Positions 52,650 through 62,500 of a DNA stretch of 64,000 bases are shown piece after piece. Where the stretch lies: positions 930,001 through 994,000 of the forward strand of contig OZ218959.1 in the NCBI GenBank assembly GCA_965112735.1, written 5' to 3'. The translations under genes and the position numbers were made by a program. The notes under the pieces were generated by a model. The model worked only from the letters and a program-made list of their open reading frames with translations, made no database searches and was not told the origin of the DNA. Positions within the stretch are counted from its first letter, which is position 1. Every line of letters starts with the position of its first letter. The DNA comes from Phaeosaccion multiseriatum. Its lineage: Eukaryota > Protista > Ochrophyta, other classes.

Positions 52650-53930
52650 TCACTCCAACTCATCGGCCCAGGCCAACAAGGCGAGGCTTTCGGAGGCGTC
52701 GAGTCTGTCGAAGGGCCCCTCCAGCCCTTGTTCAGCAGCAACCCCTCCTCCTCCGTCCATCCGATTTTCGATGCCTGAGGACTGTCCTTCGGGGATCTGC
52801 AGCTGCGGATGCTGCTGTATCACCAACTTCTCCTGCCGCTGCCGCTGCATCACGAACTGCTGCCGCTGCTGTTGCATCACGAACTGCTGCTGCTGCCGCA
52901 TCTCCTGCATCTGTATCTGCTGCTGCATCTCCTGCTGCTGCTGTTGCTGCTGCGGAATCACCAACTGCTGCTGCTGCTGCTGCTGCTGTCGCTGCTGCTC
53001 TTGCAGCATGCGCAGCTCCCGCATGTGATACACCTGCCTCCTCCTCCACTGCTCCTGTTGCCACAGCAGAAGCTTCGCATGTTTCTCCCCCTGCTTCCTT
53101 ATCAGACACGAGCAACCCCCCGCCTCGCACCCCTTCTGTCCCTGCCCGCCGCTGTTGCTGGAGGAGGAGGATGAGGAGGAAGAGGAGGGGGGGGGCAATC
53201 CACTGAAGTTGGGCGTGTTGAAGTTCGGCGTGTTGAAGTTGGACGTGTTGAAGTTGGACGTGTTGAAGTTGGACGTGTTGAAGTTGGGCGTGCTGGAGGT
53301 GGCACTCTGCCCCGTGGGGAAGCTCTGTCCGCCCTCACGGCCATAAGCCATCGATGGAGGTGTTGGTGGTATGGCGTGAGTGTTCGCGAATGTCTCCTTC
53401 TCTTCCTCGTGCGCACATAAAGGCCTCCGCTTCTTGCGCACCCTCCCTCCCGTCCCTCCCGTCCCTCCGGCGGCGGCCGTTGCGCTGCTACAATGATTGT
53501 ATGCGAAGAGATGGGGGGGAGGAGAAGGGGAAGGGGAGGGGGAAGGGGAAGGGGAAGGGGAAGAGGAGGGGGAAGAAGAAGGGGAAGGGGAAGGGGAAGG
53601 GGAAGGGGAAGGGGAAGGGGAAGGGGAAGGGGAAGGGGAAGGGGAAGGGGAAGAGGAAGAGGAAGAGGAAGGGGAAGGGGAAGGGGAAGGGGAAGGGGAA
53701 GGGGAAGGGGAAGGGAAGGGAAGGGGAAGGGAAGGGGAAGGGGAAGGGGAAAGGGAAATGAGGACGTCTGCTGGAGTGCTCGGAGGAAGTCTGCGTATCG
53801 ATCGCGTTTCCAACACTGGGAGGGCCTCCTCTCAGCCTCTTGGACACCCCTTCGGAAACCCTCTCGTACCTTTCAGCCGCGGGGGATGCAGGCTCTGGCT
53901 GGGCGGGGAGCGTCCGCTCGTCACCCTGGC

Positions 53931-53969
<39 letters not shown>

Positions 53970-54069
53970 TGCCAGTGTCCGCCTCCCGAACGTTCTCCGT
54001 CTCGTCGCCGCGGCCGCCATCATGCAGAGGGGCCGGAAGCCGCTCGCCACACGCCTGGGGGGACGTACA

Positions 54070-54101
<32 letters not shown>

Positions 54102-55243
54102 GTGTTACTGCTCCTGCTGCTGGTGTTGGTGCTGCTGCCCATGCTGGTGCTGGGGGTGTCGACGGCACTTCTCCTGCCCCACTGGCACTCCCACTGGCAC
54201 TCCCACTGGCACAGGCATTCGCCTTGCTCACGGCCCAAGAGGGGGTTTCCTGCTCCGTGCGGCGTCTCCAATACTCCAAGAGGCTCCGCAGCTGCTGGGC
54301 CTTGTCCACGTAGTAGGAGTGCGAGTAGGCGGAGGCGTGACCGTCCTCCAGGGGTCTGGCCTGGAGGCGCTGGGCCTGCGAGGTGAGGCCCTTAATCTGG
54401 CGGTCGAGCTTGGACACCCACCAGCAGGCGCGAGAGAAGGCGGGCACGTGCATGAGCGCTTCAGTGTCGAAGTCTGTGAGGGGCCTGTCTTCGGGCGGCG
54501 TCCACTGCGTCGGTGGCCTCGCCTCAGGCGGAGGACGAGGGGGAGGGAGAAGCGAAGAAGGAGGGGGGGGGTTACTTCCGACCCTGGGGGCTGCGGTGCA
54601 GAGGGCTGACACACCGGCGGCGCGAGAGCATCCGCGAGAGCTTTTCTTTGTGCGTCTGGTGCCATTGCTTTGCCTGCCCTGCCTTCCCTGCCTGCCCGCT
54701 TTCAAGGAGCTGCTGTCAGAGATGGCCATCACGCTGCTGCTGTTGTTGTTATTGTTGTTGTTGCTACTGATCCTGTTGGAGCTCCTGCCGCCAGACCTCC
54801 GGCAAGGGTTGTGCTTCATGTCCGTGGAAAGAGGGGGAGGAGAGAGCACGCTGGGAGGCGGAGAGAGGGAGGGGGAGGGGGAGAGGGTGGGACGGCAAAG
54901 GTGAGACAAGCCGGGCCGGAGGGCTGGCAGGAGACACTCTTGTAGTGCGGTGCTGGTGTGAAGAAGGAGCGAGCCGGGGGGGGTACAGGAAGGAGAAGGA
55001 GAGAAAGAGAAAGAAGAGAGGACCAAAATTTACCGACATGCTGGAGTAAGAAACACGAAAGAGAGAGAGAGCCCTCCTCGTTTCCCACCTTGAGTTCCCT
55101 GAGTTCTGTTGCTTGTGCGCAAGAGGTTCGGTCTCGCCCCCACTCCCAACCATGCTGCTTGCGGGGGGTGGGCCGGAAGCAGCGGCCTTGTCTGGGGTGG
55201 GGGGAGTGAAAGTCACGCACGGTGTCGTGTCGCCTCCCGCCAT
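52650..55243 (-). CDS. Hypothetical Q-rich protein, multi-exon
   Basis: A globular-looking segment (WTPPEDRPLTDFDTEALMHVPAFSRACWWVSKLDRQIKGL...LLEYWRRR) and a Q/M-rich terminal exon. Exon boundaries and start are uncertain. Confidence 0.4.
53517..53757. repeat. (GGGGAA)n polypurine tandem repeat
   Basis: About 240 bp, almost purely purine on the + strand. Confidence 0.95.
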
Positions 55244-55806
55244 GTCTTCTTCCCCCTTATCTGCTGAATTTGTCTTCTCTTCTTTCCTCCATTTTTTTTG
55301 GACACAGTGGCCTTCCGGCGAGGAAGGATGGGAGACAAGGGGAGATGACGGCAGACGTTCACAGCTGGTGGTGCGGAGGCCCTGCTTTCCTGATCCCGAG
55401 TCTCTCGCGAGTCTGTCGGTCTCTTCTTCTCTTTTCCTTTTATTTTTTTTCAATCGGCTGCGTCGCCATCTGTGAATCTTGGGAGCACCAACGTGTGCAC
55501 ATTCATCGGGCATTTCATCGCATTTCGATTTTTCACTCCTTCCCCCCCTTCATTCCCTAATTCTTTTCAGGAACATCGTGAAAATAAACATTGCAAGGGA
55601 ATAGAGGCAGTAGGGAGCAGCACCATTCCCTTCATCAAGCATCTCAACCTCAAACAAGGGGGGGGAATGTGCTTTTCTTCCCTCCTTTCCTCGTTCCCGC
55701 GAGCCCAAGGCCCCCTTGACTGCTTCAACGAAGGGCGAGGGACACTACGCGAGACACGGAATTGAATTAAACAGCAGTAGCGCAGCAGCAGTAGCGGGAC
55801 TTAAAG

Positions 55807-56542
55807 ATGGCAATGTCTAAAGCGGAGGCGTCGTCGACTCTGGCTTTCGATGTCGGGCTGGTGGTGATGGGCGCGAGTATGCTGGAAAAACATCTGAGAG
55901 AGAAGCTTAACGGGCAGGGCAACGGCATCAACGAATGTCTCGCCTCCATCTCCGGCGACTATTCACACAGACTCCCGAACCACGTCATTCGCAGACTGAG
56001 GAGCGTCGCGAGGTAAGACCGAAGGAAGGGTCCCTCCCTTGATTGGATTGGGAGAGAGACGCTTGGAATGGTCTTTTCTATTGGCGGTCAGAGCTTTGAA
56101 TCTCCGCCCCTGCTTCGAAAAGTGCGGACGACCACAGGCCCCACCACTGCCGTGCTCAATGCCCAATGTACCTACTCCCCCCCCCGCCCGCCCCCCGCTC
56201 AGCCTCCGCAACCGGTGCGCACACAGCATGTGCGGACACAGCATGGAGACAGAAGCCTTCACTGGCGAGGACGATCGGCAGCGCTTCAAGGAAGAGGTGG
56301 ACGACCTCATACTGGAGCTCAAAGAGCACGAAGAGAAGGTGCGGTGTGAGTGGGTGTGGTGTGGATGGGGGGGAGGGGGACGGACAAGCCTCGGCCTCGC
56401 TGTGTTGTTTACTTGACGTTTTAGCTCAGCAAGGCTCAGCAAACGGAAGAGGTCCCTTTCTTCTCATGTGGACAGCCACTGCCACTGCCCCCCCCGAGAG
56501 TCCCGACTTATTCTCAGTGCAATGCTATAATCTTCTGCTGAC

Positions 56543-56578
<36 letters not shown>

Positions 56579-56913
56579 GTGTGTGTGTATGTTCGGGCAC
56601 GCGACTGGCCATGCGTACCTCTGTGCAGCTGGCTAGAATGGAGGCGAAGAGACAGAACTTGAGCCCCGAGGAGACCCTGAAGCAGAACATGCACACCCCC
56701 TCCCCCGAAGCCCCCCCGCCTCCTCCGCGCCAGCAGCAGAGGGTGCCCCCCCCACCCCCCCCGCCCCCTCCTCCCCCTCCTCCTGCTCCTTCTCCCCCGT
56801 ACAGCTTCGGCTCCTCTGGACGAGGGGGTGGGGGGCGAGGAGGCACGGGAGCAGCTTCGGTCTCGCCCCTCTCGTACTCGCAGCAAGCCGGCCTCGGATC
56901 TCCCCCGGGCCCT

Positions 56914-56945
<32 letters not shown>

Positions 56946-57144
56946 ACAGCCGCATGTTTTGACGGCTCCCTCGAGGCTAAACCCCAACTCGGCGCCGTTT
57001 GTGGCGTCGAACTACGGCTTTGGGGGAGAGCGGGGCACAGGAGGGGGGGGGCTTGCGGCCAACAGCTTCCCCTCTCCTGCCGCGGCTCTGGGCATGGTTG
57101 GGCCCCCTTCGATACCCATGCACAGCCAGCAGCAGCAGCAGCAC

Positions 57145-57182
<38 letters not shown>

Positions 57183-58583
57183 CAGGCCCCCCTCCTCCCC
57201 CGTGCCGCAAGAGGAGCCGAAGCAGGGCTACTCTGCCTCCTTCCCCACTCTCGACGGCGCCATGTACGCCAAGAAAGGCAAGGCCAAGGGAGGCAGCATT
57301 CAGCCCCCCCCCCCACCGGCCCGTGTCGAGGATGAGCCCCCCCGCAAGGGCATCGTGGTGTCGGGGCGAGGTGTGACGGTGGACTCAGCGGAGCAGAACC
57401 GTATCAACAGAGCCTCCCGGATCGAGGCTATGAAGAAGGCCAACGCCTACGCCGCCTCCGAGGAGAAGAAGAAACGCATCGAAGAGGCGAGGGTGGCGGC
57501 GGCGGCTGCGGCGGCAGCGGCACCCAAGCAAGTCATGTACGATGGACGAGGAAGGACCATGCAGGAGCAGTACCCTTCTATGAAGCGACAGGTGCTGGGG
57601 GGCAGGGAGCTCTCCCCAGCAAGCCGGGCCAGAGAGCGGGCAGAGAAGCGACGCAAAGCCAAAGCGGAGACGTCTTGGAAGACAGCGGGGTCGTCACGGT
57701 CCAGCAAACTCCCGCACTGGCAGCTGCCGGGGGCCACCTTCAACTCTCTGCAGTGCAGGGGATGGTTCCCTACGGCCACGGCCTTTACGCGACACGCCGT
57801 GCCCTCCTTCGAGTTCTCAGTCATGCAGGACACATCGCATGCCGCAGAGAGGAGGGGCCTGGGCAGGGGAGGAGGAGGAGGAGGAGGAGGAGGAGGGGGG
57901 GGGGAGGGGGAGCGGGTGGAAGGAGTCAAGCAGTGAGACGGGGGCCTTCCTTGGGTATGTGGATGACGACGCCATCATGGCTCGAGCGGTGCAGCTCAGC
58001 AAGGACTCAGCGGAGATTTCAGATGCCGCCTTCCTCAAGGCCGCCATGGCGAGGAGCGCAGAGGAGTTTGAGCTGTACATGGAGGGGAAGAGGGGCTGGA
58101 GAGGGGGAGGGGTGGGGTTAGGCGCAGCCGACGCTTTACAGACCACCATAGCGCGCTCTATGGGGGATGTGGGGGGTCAGCGGGGCATGGGCGGGGCGGG
58201 GCAGGGGGGGGGGGACGACGACGAGGACGTGCAGCGCGCTTTGGAGGCGTCTCTGACAGGTCATGCAGAGAGAGGAGGTGGGGGGGAGGGGGATGAGGAT
58301 GAGGCGCTGAAGCAAGTGTTGGAGGCCTCGCGTCGGGAGAACGAGGAAAAGCAGCGCCTGAGGAGGATGGCGCAGCAGCAGTGGCGCAGGCCCGGCGGGA
58401 ACCCCTCATCACCATCACCATCACCATCTGCAGGACCTGCTCCTGTTTCCAATCAAAGCGGTGGTTCGGACGACGAAGCCCTGGCCCATGCCAGAGCGGA
58501 GTCTCTCAAGGAGCAGCGCCGCCAGGCATACCTCGCTGAGCTCGCGGCTGCTCAGAAGGGGCCCCTGGCCAGGCAGCGCGAGT

Positions 58584-58651
<68 letters not shown>

Positions 58652-59347
58652 GGGGGAGGAGGCGGGAGCTTGGGTGGAGCTGTGGTAGCTGGGGCGGGGG
58701 TTGCAGAGGCAGAGACGGAGGATGCCTCTCTGCGCTGGGCTATGGAGGCGTCTCTCTCGGCGGAGGCCCTCTCTTCGTCCGCCGCCGCGGCGCAGAGCGA
58801 GGACGAGGAGCTTGCCAAGGTCTTGGCACTCTCAATGGGAGGTGTAGGCGGGGCAGGGGGGGGGGATGGAGATGAACTGCCCGACGAGATCAAGGCCATT
58901 ATGGAGCAGTCCGAGAGGGAGGAGGAGGAGCGCAGGCAGAGGAGGAAGGCAGAGGAGGAAGCGGAGGCGGCGGAGCTGGAGAGGGCGATGCAGGCCTCCG
59001 TGGAGTGGGGGGCAGGGGCGGGCTTCGGCGGCCTGGGAGGGCAGCTTGGGGGCAGCGGGAGCAGCAGGGGGGGCGGGAGGGAGGTGCAGCTTAGGGTGGG
59101 CGACGACAGCGACGATGACGAGGAGGAGGACGAGGACGAGGAGGGGGACGAGGACGAGGAGGGGGTGTATGCACTACCGCCCCGGCGAACTCCGCAGCAG
59201 ATGCTGCCCATGATGCAGCAGCAGCAGCAACAGCAACAGCAACATCACTTCCCGGCCGGGGTGGGGGCCCCTCCGACGCAGCCCGCATGGTGGCTGCAGG
59301 TCCTCGAGCAGCAGGGGCAGCAGGGGCAGCAGGGGCAGCAGCCGTAG
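55807..59347 (+). CDS. HEPN-like domain, PAM2-like motif and multiple UIM protein
   Basis: Exons 55807-56012, 56203-56338 and 56629 onward. The spliced product reads LEKHLREK...LPNHVIRRLRSVASLRNRCAH (R-x4-H), then SRLNPNSAPFV (PAM2-like) and UIMs such as DEDVQRALEASL, EDEALKQVLEASR, EDEELAKVLALSM and EAAELERAMQASV. There is a 1-nt frame break in a G10 run near 57895-57904. Confidence 0.7.
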
Positions 59348-59547
59348 AACAGGCAGCAGGGCTAGCCCCAGGAGGGGCAGGAGGGGGCAGAGAGGCGAGG
59401 CGAGGACAGCAGAGGCGCATCATGCATGTTTGTAAAAGAGGAATCGGTAGTGAATGGAGAGTAGCAAAGTTAAAAAGTTTTGTTTTGGTATCGCATTCGT
59501 AGTGGAAAAGAGGATAGGGAGAAGAAATCGCAATTCCTTCGAGCAAG

Positions 59548-62500
59548 CTATGCTCTCTCCTTTTTGGCCTTTCCTTTCCCCTTCTTCGCCTTTTTGCCTC
59601 CTCCCCCTCCTGCTGCATCGTCCACCGCCGCATCACCAACTGCCCCCCCAAGTCCGATGGGCGGCACCACGTGCAGAGCATCTCTGCGCATCTGCCTGCG
59701 ATCGGCGGCAAGCTTCCGACGCATCACGAGGTCCAAGGCTGGGTCCTGACCCCCTGTACCCCCCGATGTTGTTGCCTCTCCGCCGCCTCCCCTCTTGCGG
59801 GCGGCAAGTTCCTGCTTCGTCACGAGCGCCTCTTCCTCCATGCGCTGCTTCCACAGCTTCAACCGCCGCATGTACTCGTCGGGGTCGCTGGGTGGGAGCG
59901 GGCGGCAGTGGATGGCAGTGGATGGAGGGGTGAGGGATAGAAGATGGCAGTGGATGGATGGGCAAGGCAGCAGACCGTGGAAGGTGGAGCGTAGCAGGAG
60001 GTGGGGGTGGTCAGCTCCCTGCAGTCGACAAGTGAAGGTATGGAGGCATACATGGATGGCGCTGGACGTCCCCCTGTCCCCCCTTACCTGTCCGCCAGCA
60101 CGTTTAGCTCTGCCTGCTCCTGCGCGTCTGCTGCCTTCTTCTCCTCCTGGACGCGCAGTGCGTCCTCCTTGTCCTTGATCCTCCTCTCCTCGTCCTCCAC
60201 AGCTTTGGCTTCCTCCGCCTTTTTCCTCGCCTCGGCGCTGGCCTTGTTGCGTGCCGCCTCCTCCGCTCGCTTCTCCACTGAAAAGAGGAGAGGAAGGGAA
60301 CGGTAAGGGGAAGAGGGGTGAGATCGACACCGAAATTGAATCAGCAAGTCGTTGCCATGTGTCTGTTGTCGACTAACGTCAGTACATACCCAAGTACATA
60401 CGTAACGTCTACGTAAGTAAGTCCTCCCCTCACCTACTCTGCGCTGGTACTCGTCGGGGTCCTCTGCGAGGAGGCGGTGCAGCTCCGTCGCCTCCCGTTC
60501 TGCGCTCCTCGCGTCCTGCCACAGTGAGATACAGGCATTGTCACAGATGGTCCCAGATGGTCCCAGATGGTCCCAGATGGTCACATGGCACAGTGAGATG
60601 AGATGTAAGATGGTCTCAGTGTGCGGTGGTCACCAAAGGTCAGGCCATGGCTTGCTGGGGATATTTGGTGAAATTATGCGCCAACAACAACCCTTTGGAA
60701 GCACATGAACACACAAACGCACACACACACACATACACACACACGCACGCACACACACACATGCAACACACACACTTACCTCCTCCCGCTGAGCCTTCTC
60801 CTTGTCAGCCTTGGCTTGCTCCTCCCTCTCCCGCAGCACATCTGCCGACAGCGCAGTGTCCTGCTCCTCGTCCGCCCACACGCACGCCACCTTTAGGAAA
60901 CACGCTTCTTCCAAGGCACTGCGAGCGATGGCCACGAACAAATCCAGCGACCCCACGGCCTCCTCTTGCACCTAATTAGGGGAGGGGGGGCGGTGGGCTC
61001 TGCTGTGAGTGCGTGGGTGTGTGGTATGTGTGAGATGATAGTGCCCTGCCCCTATCCTTAAGAGTTCAAAACTGCCCCCACCCCCATCCTCTCACCTCTG
61101 GAAAGGCCTTGATGAGAACAAAGTCGAGCACGAGCAGGTCTGGCACAAAGGCCATACCCTCCCGCACCACTCTCGGCAGCCACATGTACGCCTCGAGGAG
61201 AGCTGCTTTGACCTTGGCCTGCAGCACCGCGGGCTTGCTTATGTCAACAGTGCGCAGCTCGGGGGGACGGCTTGCGTCAGAGAGACAGTGTGCTTCGTAG
61301 AGACGAGACAGCTCCTCGAAGAGGCCGTCGTCGGATTGGAGGAAGGAGCGCGCCTGCTGCGTTTCCTCGTACTCCATGCTGGCGGGGGGGGGGGGGGGGG
61401 GATGGCAGTGGATGGACGAGCGGGGTAGGGAGAGGAAAGGAGAGGAGGGGAGGGGTGAGGCGATGGCGACACATACGCGGGAAGTAACGCGGGGGGAAGA
61501 GCAGCAGAGCAGCAGTCGTCGGTACAGTCCCCACTCACCCCTTGAGGTAGACCGAATCCTCAAACAGCACAACCCTGTGCCCAAGGCAGCGATGCGGCCA
61601 CCAAGGAGGAGGCAGCGTGTACTCATCCACCGAGTGTGCCTCTTGCGCCACCCCTGCATGCACAAGCCGTGCGTCCGCCACGCCGATGGGTCCGTGAGAG
61701 TCACTCTCTCCGATGAGGTCCAGCAGGGCATAGCTGCGGTGGACGGTGAGGGAGTGCGTGAAGCGCATAGGCTCGAACTTGCCCTCTTCCTGCCCCTGTG
61801 TCACCAACTGCTGCCCCTCAGGGCTCTGTGCCTGCCCCTGCTTACTTGCACGGCGGCCGCCGAGGGGGTCCCCAAGCCACGCCCCCATCTGAGCGATGTC
61901 ACTCGGGACCTCCAGCGATCTGCACGGAAAGGAAGGGAAGGGAGGTGAAAGACGGAGAGAGGGAGAGAAGGGGGTGGGCAGAGGTGGGAAGGAGTCAGAG
62001 TCAGCGGCAGCTCTCCCTCCCCCCCAACCCCCCCTCAGGCACTCACCCCGTGGTCTTGAAGGGTATGTTGCCGTCCTGCGTGCTCTCCGAAGGCGCGTAC
62101 GTATTTGCCGTGATGGGTCCAGCCACAATCTGAGTCAAGTACCCCTCCACTGACTGCCTGGCCGCGCGTTTCACACCCCCATCAAAGCTGAAGGGGTCTT
62201 CATCCGCATCGTCGTCATCCATGAGTCCACCGGCGGTGCTGCTCCTGCCCTTGGCCTTGGTGCTGGGCTTAGGCTTGGTGCTGCTTCTCTTGTTGAGCTT
62301 GTCATTGTCTTTGTCAAGGTCCTTGTCTTCCTCCGCCCACACCTTGGGGAGCATTTTGTAAGACGTCAGAGTCTTGATGCCTGGGGAGAGTGAGGGGGGT
62401 TGGGGGGAGGACGACCAGGACATGGGGAGTCAGAGTGTCAGGACATGGAGTCAGAGTGTCAGGAGTCAGAGCGTCACGTCTCCCCTACCCCGTCGAAGCA

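Follow-up and report, generated by a model that had tools for sequence, protein, structure and literature searches.

Which product is encoded between positions 55807 and 59347 (plus strand) of a 64,000-nucleotide stretch of DNA from the alga Phaeosaccion multiseriatum (GenBank assembly GCA_965112735.1, contig OZ218959.1, positions 930,001 to 994,000; hereafter the window)? A first-pass annotation of this stretch had proposed an RNase of the HEPN type, with a PAM2-like motif binding the MLLE domain of poly(A)-binding protein (PABP) and a C-terminal series of ubiquitin-interacting motifs (UIMs). The window is GC-rich eukaryotic (algal) DNA, and the assembly comprises 67 Mb in 22 contigs. To judge from its sequence, 55807-59347 looks like one real, lineage-restricted orphan gene with a mostly disordered product of about 1,000 amino acids. 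On balance we lean towards reading this product as an orphan ubiquitin-binding adaptor on PABP-bound messenger ribonucleoprotein particles (mRNPs). As for the N-terminal helical head, a divergent HEPN domain is compatible with what it shows: E27x3R31, a third core helix that closes with R71-N-x3-H76, and a helix plan like that of the DUF4145 family.

UIM array and PAM2-like peptide

Nine distinct UIM-type cores, many of them in pairs, were counted between 57965 and 58999 (Table 1), in line with the eight to ten proposed earlier. Four are strictly canonical. A loose UIM pattern gave 19 matches; over 2000 shuffles it averaged 0.22 and never exceeded 4. The strict pattern gave the four canonical cores, compared with a shuffle mean of 0.07. 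The cores have the acidic run followed by Phi-xx-A-xxx-S-xx-acidic; the Pfam model PF02809 reached only 15 bits (E 0.023, three stretches; gathering threshold 21 bits), a sub-gathering score that is usual for so short a motif. Nine such helices would be the hallmark of a multivalent receptor for ubiquitin or polyubiquitin.

The PAM2 consensus is LNxxAxEFxP, in which Phe10 is the main determinant and position 7 holds a small residue (PMC7356810). Of this consensus the peptide SRLNPNSAPFVA, in frame in a disordered stretch of exon 3 and at the place given in the first-pass annotation, retains L3, N4 and the key F10. At the DNA level, a degenerate pattern encoding LNPN[AS]xxF occurs at 4 sites in the genome, versus 1 for its reversed control. 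A canonical MLLE/PABP gene is present as well: the MLLE/PABC domain (PF00658) has a single match in the genome (C4:1894001-1894198, minus strand; E 4e-30), which carries the signature KITGMLLEMD and forms the C-terminal end of a 385-codon open frame. Complex prediction for this MLLE domain and a PAM2-like 40-mer gave 0.29 (mark 0.34), which is no evidence either way. The FPTL motif and the poly-Q and poly-P tracts noticed earlier were also located, all of them in exon 3.

Taken together, the UIM array and the PAM2-like motif appear well above chance. The adaptor would probably dock on PABP through its PAM2-like motif and so be seated on poly(A)-mRNPs, and the UIM array would recognise ubiquitin attached, for instance, to ribosomes or to RNA-binding proteins.

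The three other LNPN[AS]xxF sites are candidate PAM2 proteins of this alga: LNPNAKSF (C1:1041263-1041286, minus strand), which is fully canonical, LNPNSSVF (C1:6437684-6437707, minus strand) and LNPNSPCF (C12:1718697-1718720, plus strand).

Splice model and frame break

We regard the locus as a real coding gene because GC content is periodic by codon position in every exon and flat in the introns; the values for the three codon positions are 0.56/0.43/0.72 in exon 1 and 0.67/0.31/0.78 in exon 2, both coding-like. Both introns are of the GT-AG type, and the junction of exon 2 with 56629 is in phase 0. The donor GAG/GTAAGA at 56013 is the sole strong donor, and the acceptor of intron 1 (56202) is the first AG past a long C-rich tract. 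The alternative acceptors at 56226 and 56241 are in frame, but with either of them the R71-H76 motif is lost. The splice model 56012/56203 and 56338/56629 thus seems the best that the sequence allows. Joining 55807-56012 to 56203-56338 yields precisely the peptide that the first-pass annotation had quoted. Exon 1 is single-copy in its own genome. Exon 3 completes the helical head and also encodes poly-P and poly-Q tracts, Gly-rich ones, a basic, Ala-rich stretch, FPTL and the PAM2-like peptide. Intron 2 has a (CT)n followed by a (GT)n microsatellite (window 56537-56592).

The placing of the HEPN-like and UIM parts in one gene had overlooked a +1 frame break. GC content at the third codon position (GC3) in frame 1 stays at 0.8-0.85 until about 57830; in frame 2 it is 0.75-0.95 from about 57840 onward. 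Frame 1 of exon 3 closes at a TGA (57934-57936), and the UIM array lies in frame 2, which ends at a TAG (59345-59347). Since the UIM frame is out of frame with exon 3, a single protein requires an indel or a short intron at 57830-57870. The break is probably a one-base assembly indel in G-runs, of the long-read homopolymer kind, or else an intron of 49-52 nucleotides with weak sites. G-runs are typical sites of indel errors in long reads. A 229-nucleotide intron (57592-57820) that would mend the frame was excluded by the frame-1 coding periodicity inside that stretch.

One transcription unit is the likelier reading of these data, because frame 2 stays free of stops over about 500 codons, the two parts lie too close together for untranslated regions or a promoter between them, and the sole TGTAA comes after the final stop. 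This TGTAA we take to be a candidate poly(A) signal of the green-algal type; none follows the internal stop. The alternative is that the TGA at 57934-57936 is real, so that the product is a UIM-less protein of 550 amino acids with the head and the PAM2-like peptide; the UIM frame would then be either a gene of its own or a remnant in decay. The assembly as given carries both the frame break and the in-frame TGA, and the periodicity switch leaves no place for a canonical intron as long as the gene's others (190-290 nucleotides). However, strong GC3 periodicity (0.72-0.80) runs through the long open UIM frame, all nine motifs are intact, and the G-runs lie where the frame switches; together with the missing space for a promoter and the position of the TGTAA, this makes a split gene improbable.

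The helical head

Exons 1-3 encode an N-terminal helical head of about 120 amino acids. Searches were made with a spliced 129-residue peptide, to which both exon peptides are 100% identical. HEPN domains have been described as four-helix up-down cores of 100-120 residues with an insert between helices 2 and 3, an Rx4-6H motif with a polar residue after the Arg at the end of core helix 3 or the start of the next loop, and, upstream of it in core helix 2, a conserved acidic residue that is usually part of Ex3[KR]; many of them are non-catalytic (PMC3710099). Both sequence hallmarks occur in the head at the positions given in that description. Ex3[KR]-type motifs are common in charged helices, so E27-K-H-L-R31 is a weak criterion. 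R-[NDH]-x3-H by itself is weak as well: by a rough estimate from typical residue frequencies, chance would produce it about 0.02 times per 110-residue domain.

AlphaFold2 modelling of the head without homologues gave an all-helical structure of low confidence (predicted local distance difference test, pLDDT, 58.8; predicted template modelling score, pTM, 0.44) with helices at 5-34, 40-52, 58-79 and 90-124 and a low-confidence loop at 80-89. Foldseek found no match to this model at E<=0.001. An exhaustive structural aligner returned only generic four-helix bundles (Z<=10.8, within the noise range for helical models), among which Csx28 was tied. A true DUF4145 domain (68 bits to Pfam), folded likewise as a control, gave similar values (pLDDT 60.3, pTM 0.44), and no HEPN structure was among its top 50 structural matches (best Z 7.0). 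The fold search that the first-pass annotation had suggested, with a HEPN fold as the expected outcome, is therefore a test without power: the head's lack of a HEPN-fold match says nothing, because the control failed alike. The two models have very similar helix plans: an N-terminal pair of helices (fused into one in the head), a middle helix of 13 residues, the motif-bearing helix, a low-confidence loop of 10-14 residues and a long last helix.

Profile comparisons were made with local profiles built from 52 bacterial DUF4145 domains and 29 HepT domains. The DUF4145 profile scored the head at 5.4 bits in hmmsearch (p 0.001), which places the head below the gathering cut-off of PF13643 (23.1 bits), and local hhalign gave P 0.0076 with a probability of 5%. 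The HepT profile gave p 0.003 and a probability of 11.5%. The head's L-R-N-R-C-A-H is in register with the N..AH or R[DN]xxxH motif of the DUF4145, HepT and DUF6548-like profiles (p 0.001-0.003). Global hhalign aligned the head with DUF4145 colinearly over 103 columns with a score of 15.1; the best of 200 shuffles reached 10.5, the best of 448 windows from real bacterial proteins 11.9, and the reversed peptide 3.1. A Smith-Waterman alignment with a first DUF6548-like protein covered 52 residues, from LEKHLREKLN to LRNRCAH (p ~2e-4); a second such protein, 51% identical to the first, gave p 0.17, and a profile of just these two members gave p 0.003.

For exon 1 by itself, without RNxxxH, the language-model look-alikes were DUF6548 (0.88), MtlR (0.85) and DUF4145 (0.79). 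MtlR and DUF4145 belong to one HEPN assemblage (PMC3710099).

Several results weigh against a HEPN head and against the adaptor model as a whole. With the spliced head, Pfam returned 0 families at E<=10 and PADLOC 0 matches, and a sequence search of the PDB returned only coiled-coil noise (Rrp7, SerRS; E 0.16-1.5). The Pfam model of DUF4145 had no match at E<=10 in a six-frame scan of the whole genome. No homologue, orthologue or paralogue of any part of the gene was found in the searches made: phmmer with exon 1 against 1.84 billion cluster representatives gave no match at E<=0.001, the self match being absent too; a paralogue search in the alga's own genome found none; and homologue searches with exon 3, with its residues 196-405 and with the UIM half were blank (targets of 0.55-1.75 times the query length, with low-complexity words swamping the search). 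The hhalign probabilities for HEPN-type profiles are only 5-12%. Circularly rotated head peptides score 7.5-15.8 in global hhalign, nearly as high as the native peptide. Exon 1 alone gives p ~0.1, and the profile signal is gone without the motif helix. Look-alike scores (Atlas) count from 0.9 upward and all of them fall below this, so they serve as a lead only. SRLNPNSAPFVA deviates from the PAM2 consensus at three positions (A7S, E9P, P12A). Given the break at about 57830-57870, the connection between the head/PAM2 part and the UIM part is inferred, and the splice junctions and the expression of the gene are predictions from sequence; of the four sequencing runs found to contain the locus, all from one study, none is catalogued as RNA.

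The HEPN profile signal thus appears to be essentially that of the 24-residue motif helix; it is suggestive, and far from significant for a pick from a whole-genome scan. The HEPN assignment made in the first pass keeps its Rx4H and Ex3R motifs and its helix layout, but has no significant family match, Pfam, PADLOC and phmmer being blank and the profiles reaching p ~1e-3. The same holds for the proposed likeness to DUF4145-like HEPN domains: the motif is in register and the helix plan is alike, but the score falls far short of the family's cut-off and comes from the motif helix. A HEPN fold of the head seems to us somewhat short of an even chance.

In the first-pass model the head is an active, metal-independent HEPN endoribonuclease, docked by PAM2 on PABP-bound mRNA and recruited or dimerised by polyubiquitin through the UIMs, with collided ribosomes, stress or antiviral shut-off as example settings. 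An Rx4H whose Arg is followed by Asn, placed where the third core helix ends, and an Ex3R upstream, as defined for catalytic HEPN domains, would suit this model, as would the three in-register profile alignments, the Smith-Waterman match, the HEPN-type look-alikes of exon 1 and the presence of the PAM2-like motif and nine UIMs. Against this, no database match is significant and the signal rests on one helix, the pairwise match was not repeated with the 51%-identical relative, the structure model is of low confidence and the fold search non-specific. Many HEPN domains are moreover non-catalytic (PMC3710099), and activity and dimerisation are predictions. We consider the complete RNase model unlikely.

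Its main rival is that the head is an ordinary helical bundle or coiled coil, serving as an oligomerisation or scaffold module, in which RNxxxH arose by chance; the protein would then be a low-complexity ubiquitin-binding scaffold. The chance rate of the motif, roughly estimated at about 0.02 per domain, is compatible with this, the best structural neighbours are generic four-helix bundles in the noise range, helix 90-124 is coiled-coil-like (the Rrp7 and SerRS matches), and every curated family search was blank. However, two HEPN hallmarks co-occur in the correct helices, the layout matches that of DUF4145, and the look-alike families of exon 1, which lacks the motif, are of HEPN type. A plain scaffold is a serious possibility, if not quite a probable one. 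The adaptor reading that we prefer holds under both variants, because they differ solely in the nature of the head; the degrees of confidence given here thus cover overlapping claims and do not sum to one.

A CUE or J-domain reading of FPTL or of the head was rejected: there is no MFP/LL or HPD context and no Pfam match.

The bacterial DUF6548-like proteins (PF20185; L205:1024-1791, minus strand, and L211:301-1041, plus strand) both have LRNAIVH (Rx4H) followed by CBS domains. To judge from sequence, the half N-terminal to the CBS domains has the look of a HEPN domain that has gone unrecognised. The family, present in 1 of the 201 Bacillota genomes sampled, is rare. In the alga's genome the Pfam DUF6548 model matched only CBS-like regions, none of them in the window. 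Weak matches to its C-terminal half (approximately 105-163) occur at 16 places in the genome (for example C1:4199022, C11:1468945 and C6:3274993), and are most likely ordinary CBS domains.

Table 1. Predicted features of the gene (positions in the window)
Feature	Positions	Strand	Remarks
Exon 1	55807-56012	+	residues 1-68 plus 2 nucleotides of codon 69; first ATG of the open frame; GC3 0.72
E27-K-H-L-R31	55885-55899	+	Ex3[KR]-type acidic motif in first long helix; aligns with LE of DUF4145 helix 2 (global hhalign)
Intron 1 (predicted)	56013-56202	+	190 nucleotides; GTAAGA...C-rich tract...CAG; GC flat by codon position
Exon 2	56203-56338	+	last nucleotide of codon 69, then residues 70-114
R71-N72-R73-C74-A75-H76	56207-56224	+	Rx4H motif, polar residue after R; C-terminal end of predicted helix 58-79
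Intron 2 (predicted)	56339-56628	+	290 nucleotides; GTGCGG...GCAG; (CT)n/(GT)n microsatellites inside; GC flat
Exon 3, frame 1	56629-57850 (3' limit approximate)	+	GC3 0.8-0.85 up to about 57830
PAM2-like peptide SRLNPNSAPFVA	56971-57006	+	in frame in exon 3, disordered stretch
FPTL tetrapeptide	57241-57252	+	exon 3
+1 frame break	57830-57870	+	coding periodicity shifts from frame 1 to frame 2; G-runs, GGA/GAG repeats
C-terminal coding part, frame 2	57851-59347 (5' limit approximate)	+	poly-E, nine UIM-type helices, poly-Q, acidic tract
UIM 1 DDDAIMARAVQLS	57965-58000	+	strict
UIM 2 SDAAFLKAAMARS	58022-58057	+	loose
UIM 3 DDDEDVQRALEAS	58217-58252	+	strict
UIM 4 DEDEALKQVLEAS	58295-58330	+	Val at Ala position
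UIM 5 SDDEALAHARAES	58469-58504	+	strict
UIM 6 TEDASLRWAMEAS	58718-58753	+	strict
UIM 7 SEDEELAKVLALS	58799-58834	+	best Pfam UIM stretch
UIM 8 PDEIKAIMEQS	58883-58912	+	Ile at Ala position
UIM 9 EAAELERAMQAS	58964-58999	+	pattern match
TGTAA	59431-59435	+	85 nucleotides past final stop; sole plus-strand copy in 55000-60500

Relation to known systems

The head resembles the DUF4145 assemblage (PF13643, MtlR and the N-terminal domains of DUF6548-like proteins) in being all-helical and about 115 residues long, with an Ex3[KR] in an early helix, an R-N-x3-H that closes the third core helix just ahead of a loop, core helices 2 and 3 separated by a short inserted helix, and predicted helix lengths close to those of true DUF4145. 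It differs in that the conserved Arg of DUF4145 (R..GN.AAH) is replaced by Ala, the head's Arg standing directly before the Asn, as in HepT. Unlike the assemblage, the gene has a eukaryotic host, introns and no relatives, and the head's partners are a PAM2-like motif and UIMs, not restriction or defence modules.

Ubiquitin-binding endoribonucleases of mRNA surveillance include Cue2/NONU-1/N4BP2, which combine CUE and Smr domains, and N4BP1 and KHNYN, which combine NYN with a ubiquitin-binding domain; plant CID7 consists of PAM2, a CUE-like domain and Smr. The logic proposed for the algal protein, ubiquitin-binding modules joined to a small endonuclease, is like that of these proteins, and CID7 shares PAM2 as well. 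Pfam searches found no Smr, NYN, PIN, CUE or UBA domain in the gene (only weak UIM and low-complexity matches). Unlike in Cue2/NONU-1/N4BP2, ubiquitin would be bound through UIMs and the nuclease, if any, would be of HEPN type; the likeness is one of logic, not of membership.

Among the multi-UIM ubiquitin receptors are ataxin-3, RAP80/UIMC1, ANKRD13, the epsins and Rpn10/S5a. The algal array shares with them acidic-Phi-xx-A-xxx-S helices, partly in tandem pairs, set in low-complexity and poly-Q sequence. Its nine copies are unusually many, and it lacks a Josephin, ENTH, VWA or ankyrin domain. The likeness to PAM2 proteins (Paip1/2, eRF3, ataxin-2, Tob, LARP4, plant CID/ERD15) lies in the LNPN..F core in a disordered region and the MLLE domain in the same genome; Ser for Ala at position 7, Pro for Glu at 9 and Ala for Pro at 12 set the algal peptide apart, and its binding is a prediction.

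No described protein that combines HEPN, PAM2 and UIMs is known to us. Full-text searching of the literature for HEPN in combination with 'ubiquitin-interacting motif' turned up a single, unrelated paper; none that combines PAM2 with UIM and MLLE was found. If the head were an active HEPN RNase, the protein would be the first known to unite the three elements. It would be a eukaryotic HEPN endoribonuclease of new architecture, cleaving poly(A) mRNAs where polyubiquitin accumulates, an outcome that we think doubtful. It would represent a third independent solution, after Smr (Cue2/NONU-1) and NYN (N4BP1), to the coupling of ubiquitin signals to mRNA cutting; algae would link ubiquitin marks to mRNA cleavage through a type of nuclease otherwise encountered in bacterial defence, RNase L/Ire1 and Las1, and the activation of HEPN dimerisation by ubiquitin would become directly testable. 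If the head is a helical scaffold only, the product would still be an orphan adaptor with an unusual wealth of UIMs, probably a link between PABP-mRNPs and ubiquitin, and of local interest only.

The tail of the coding region (window 59306-59343) is CAG/GGG-rich; the C-terminal queries end at 59305. Upstream of the gene, on the minus strand, lies a 512-codon open frame (window 53488-55026), for which a Pfam search gave no match. It ends in a long PF/FP dipeptide repeat with poly-N and poly-Q, and represents either a gene of low complexity or a (GAAAAG)-type repeat that is read through.

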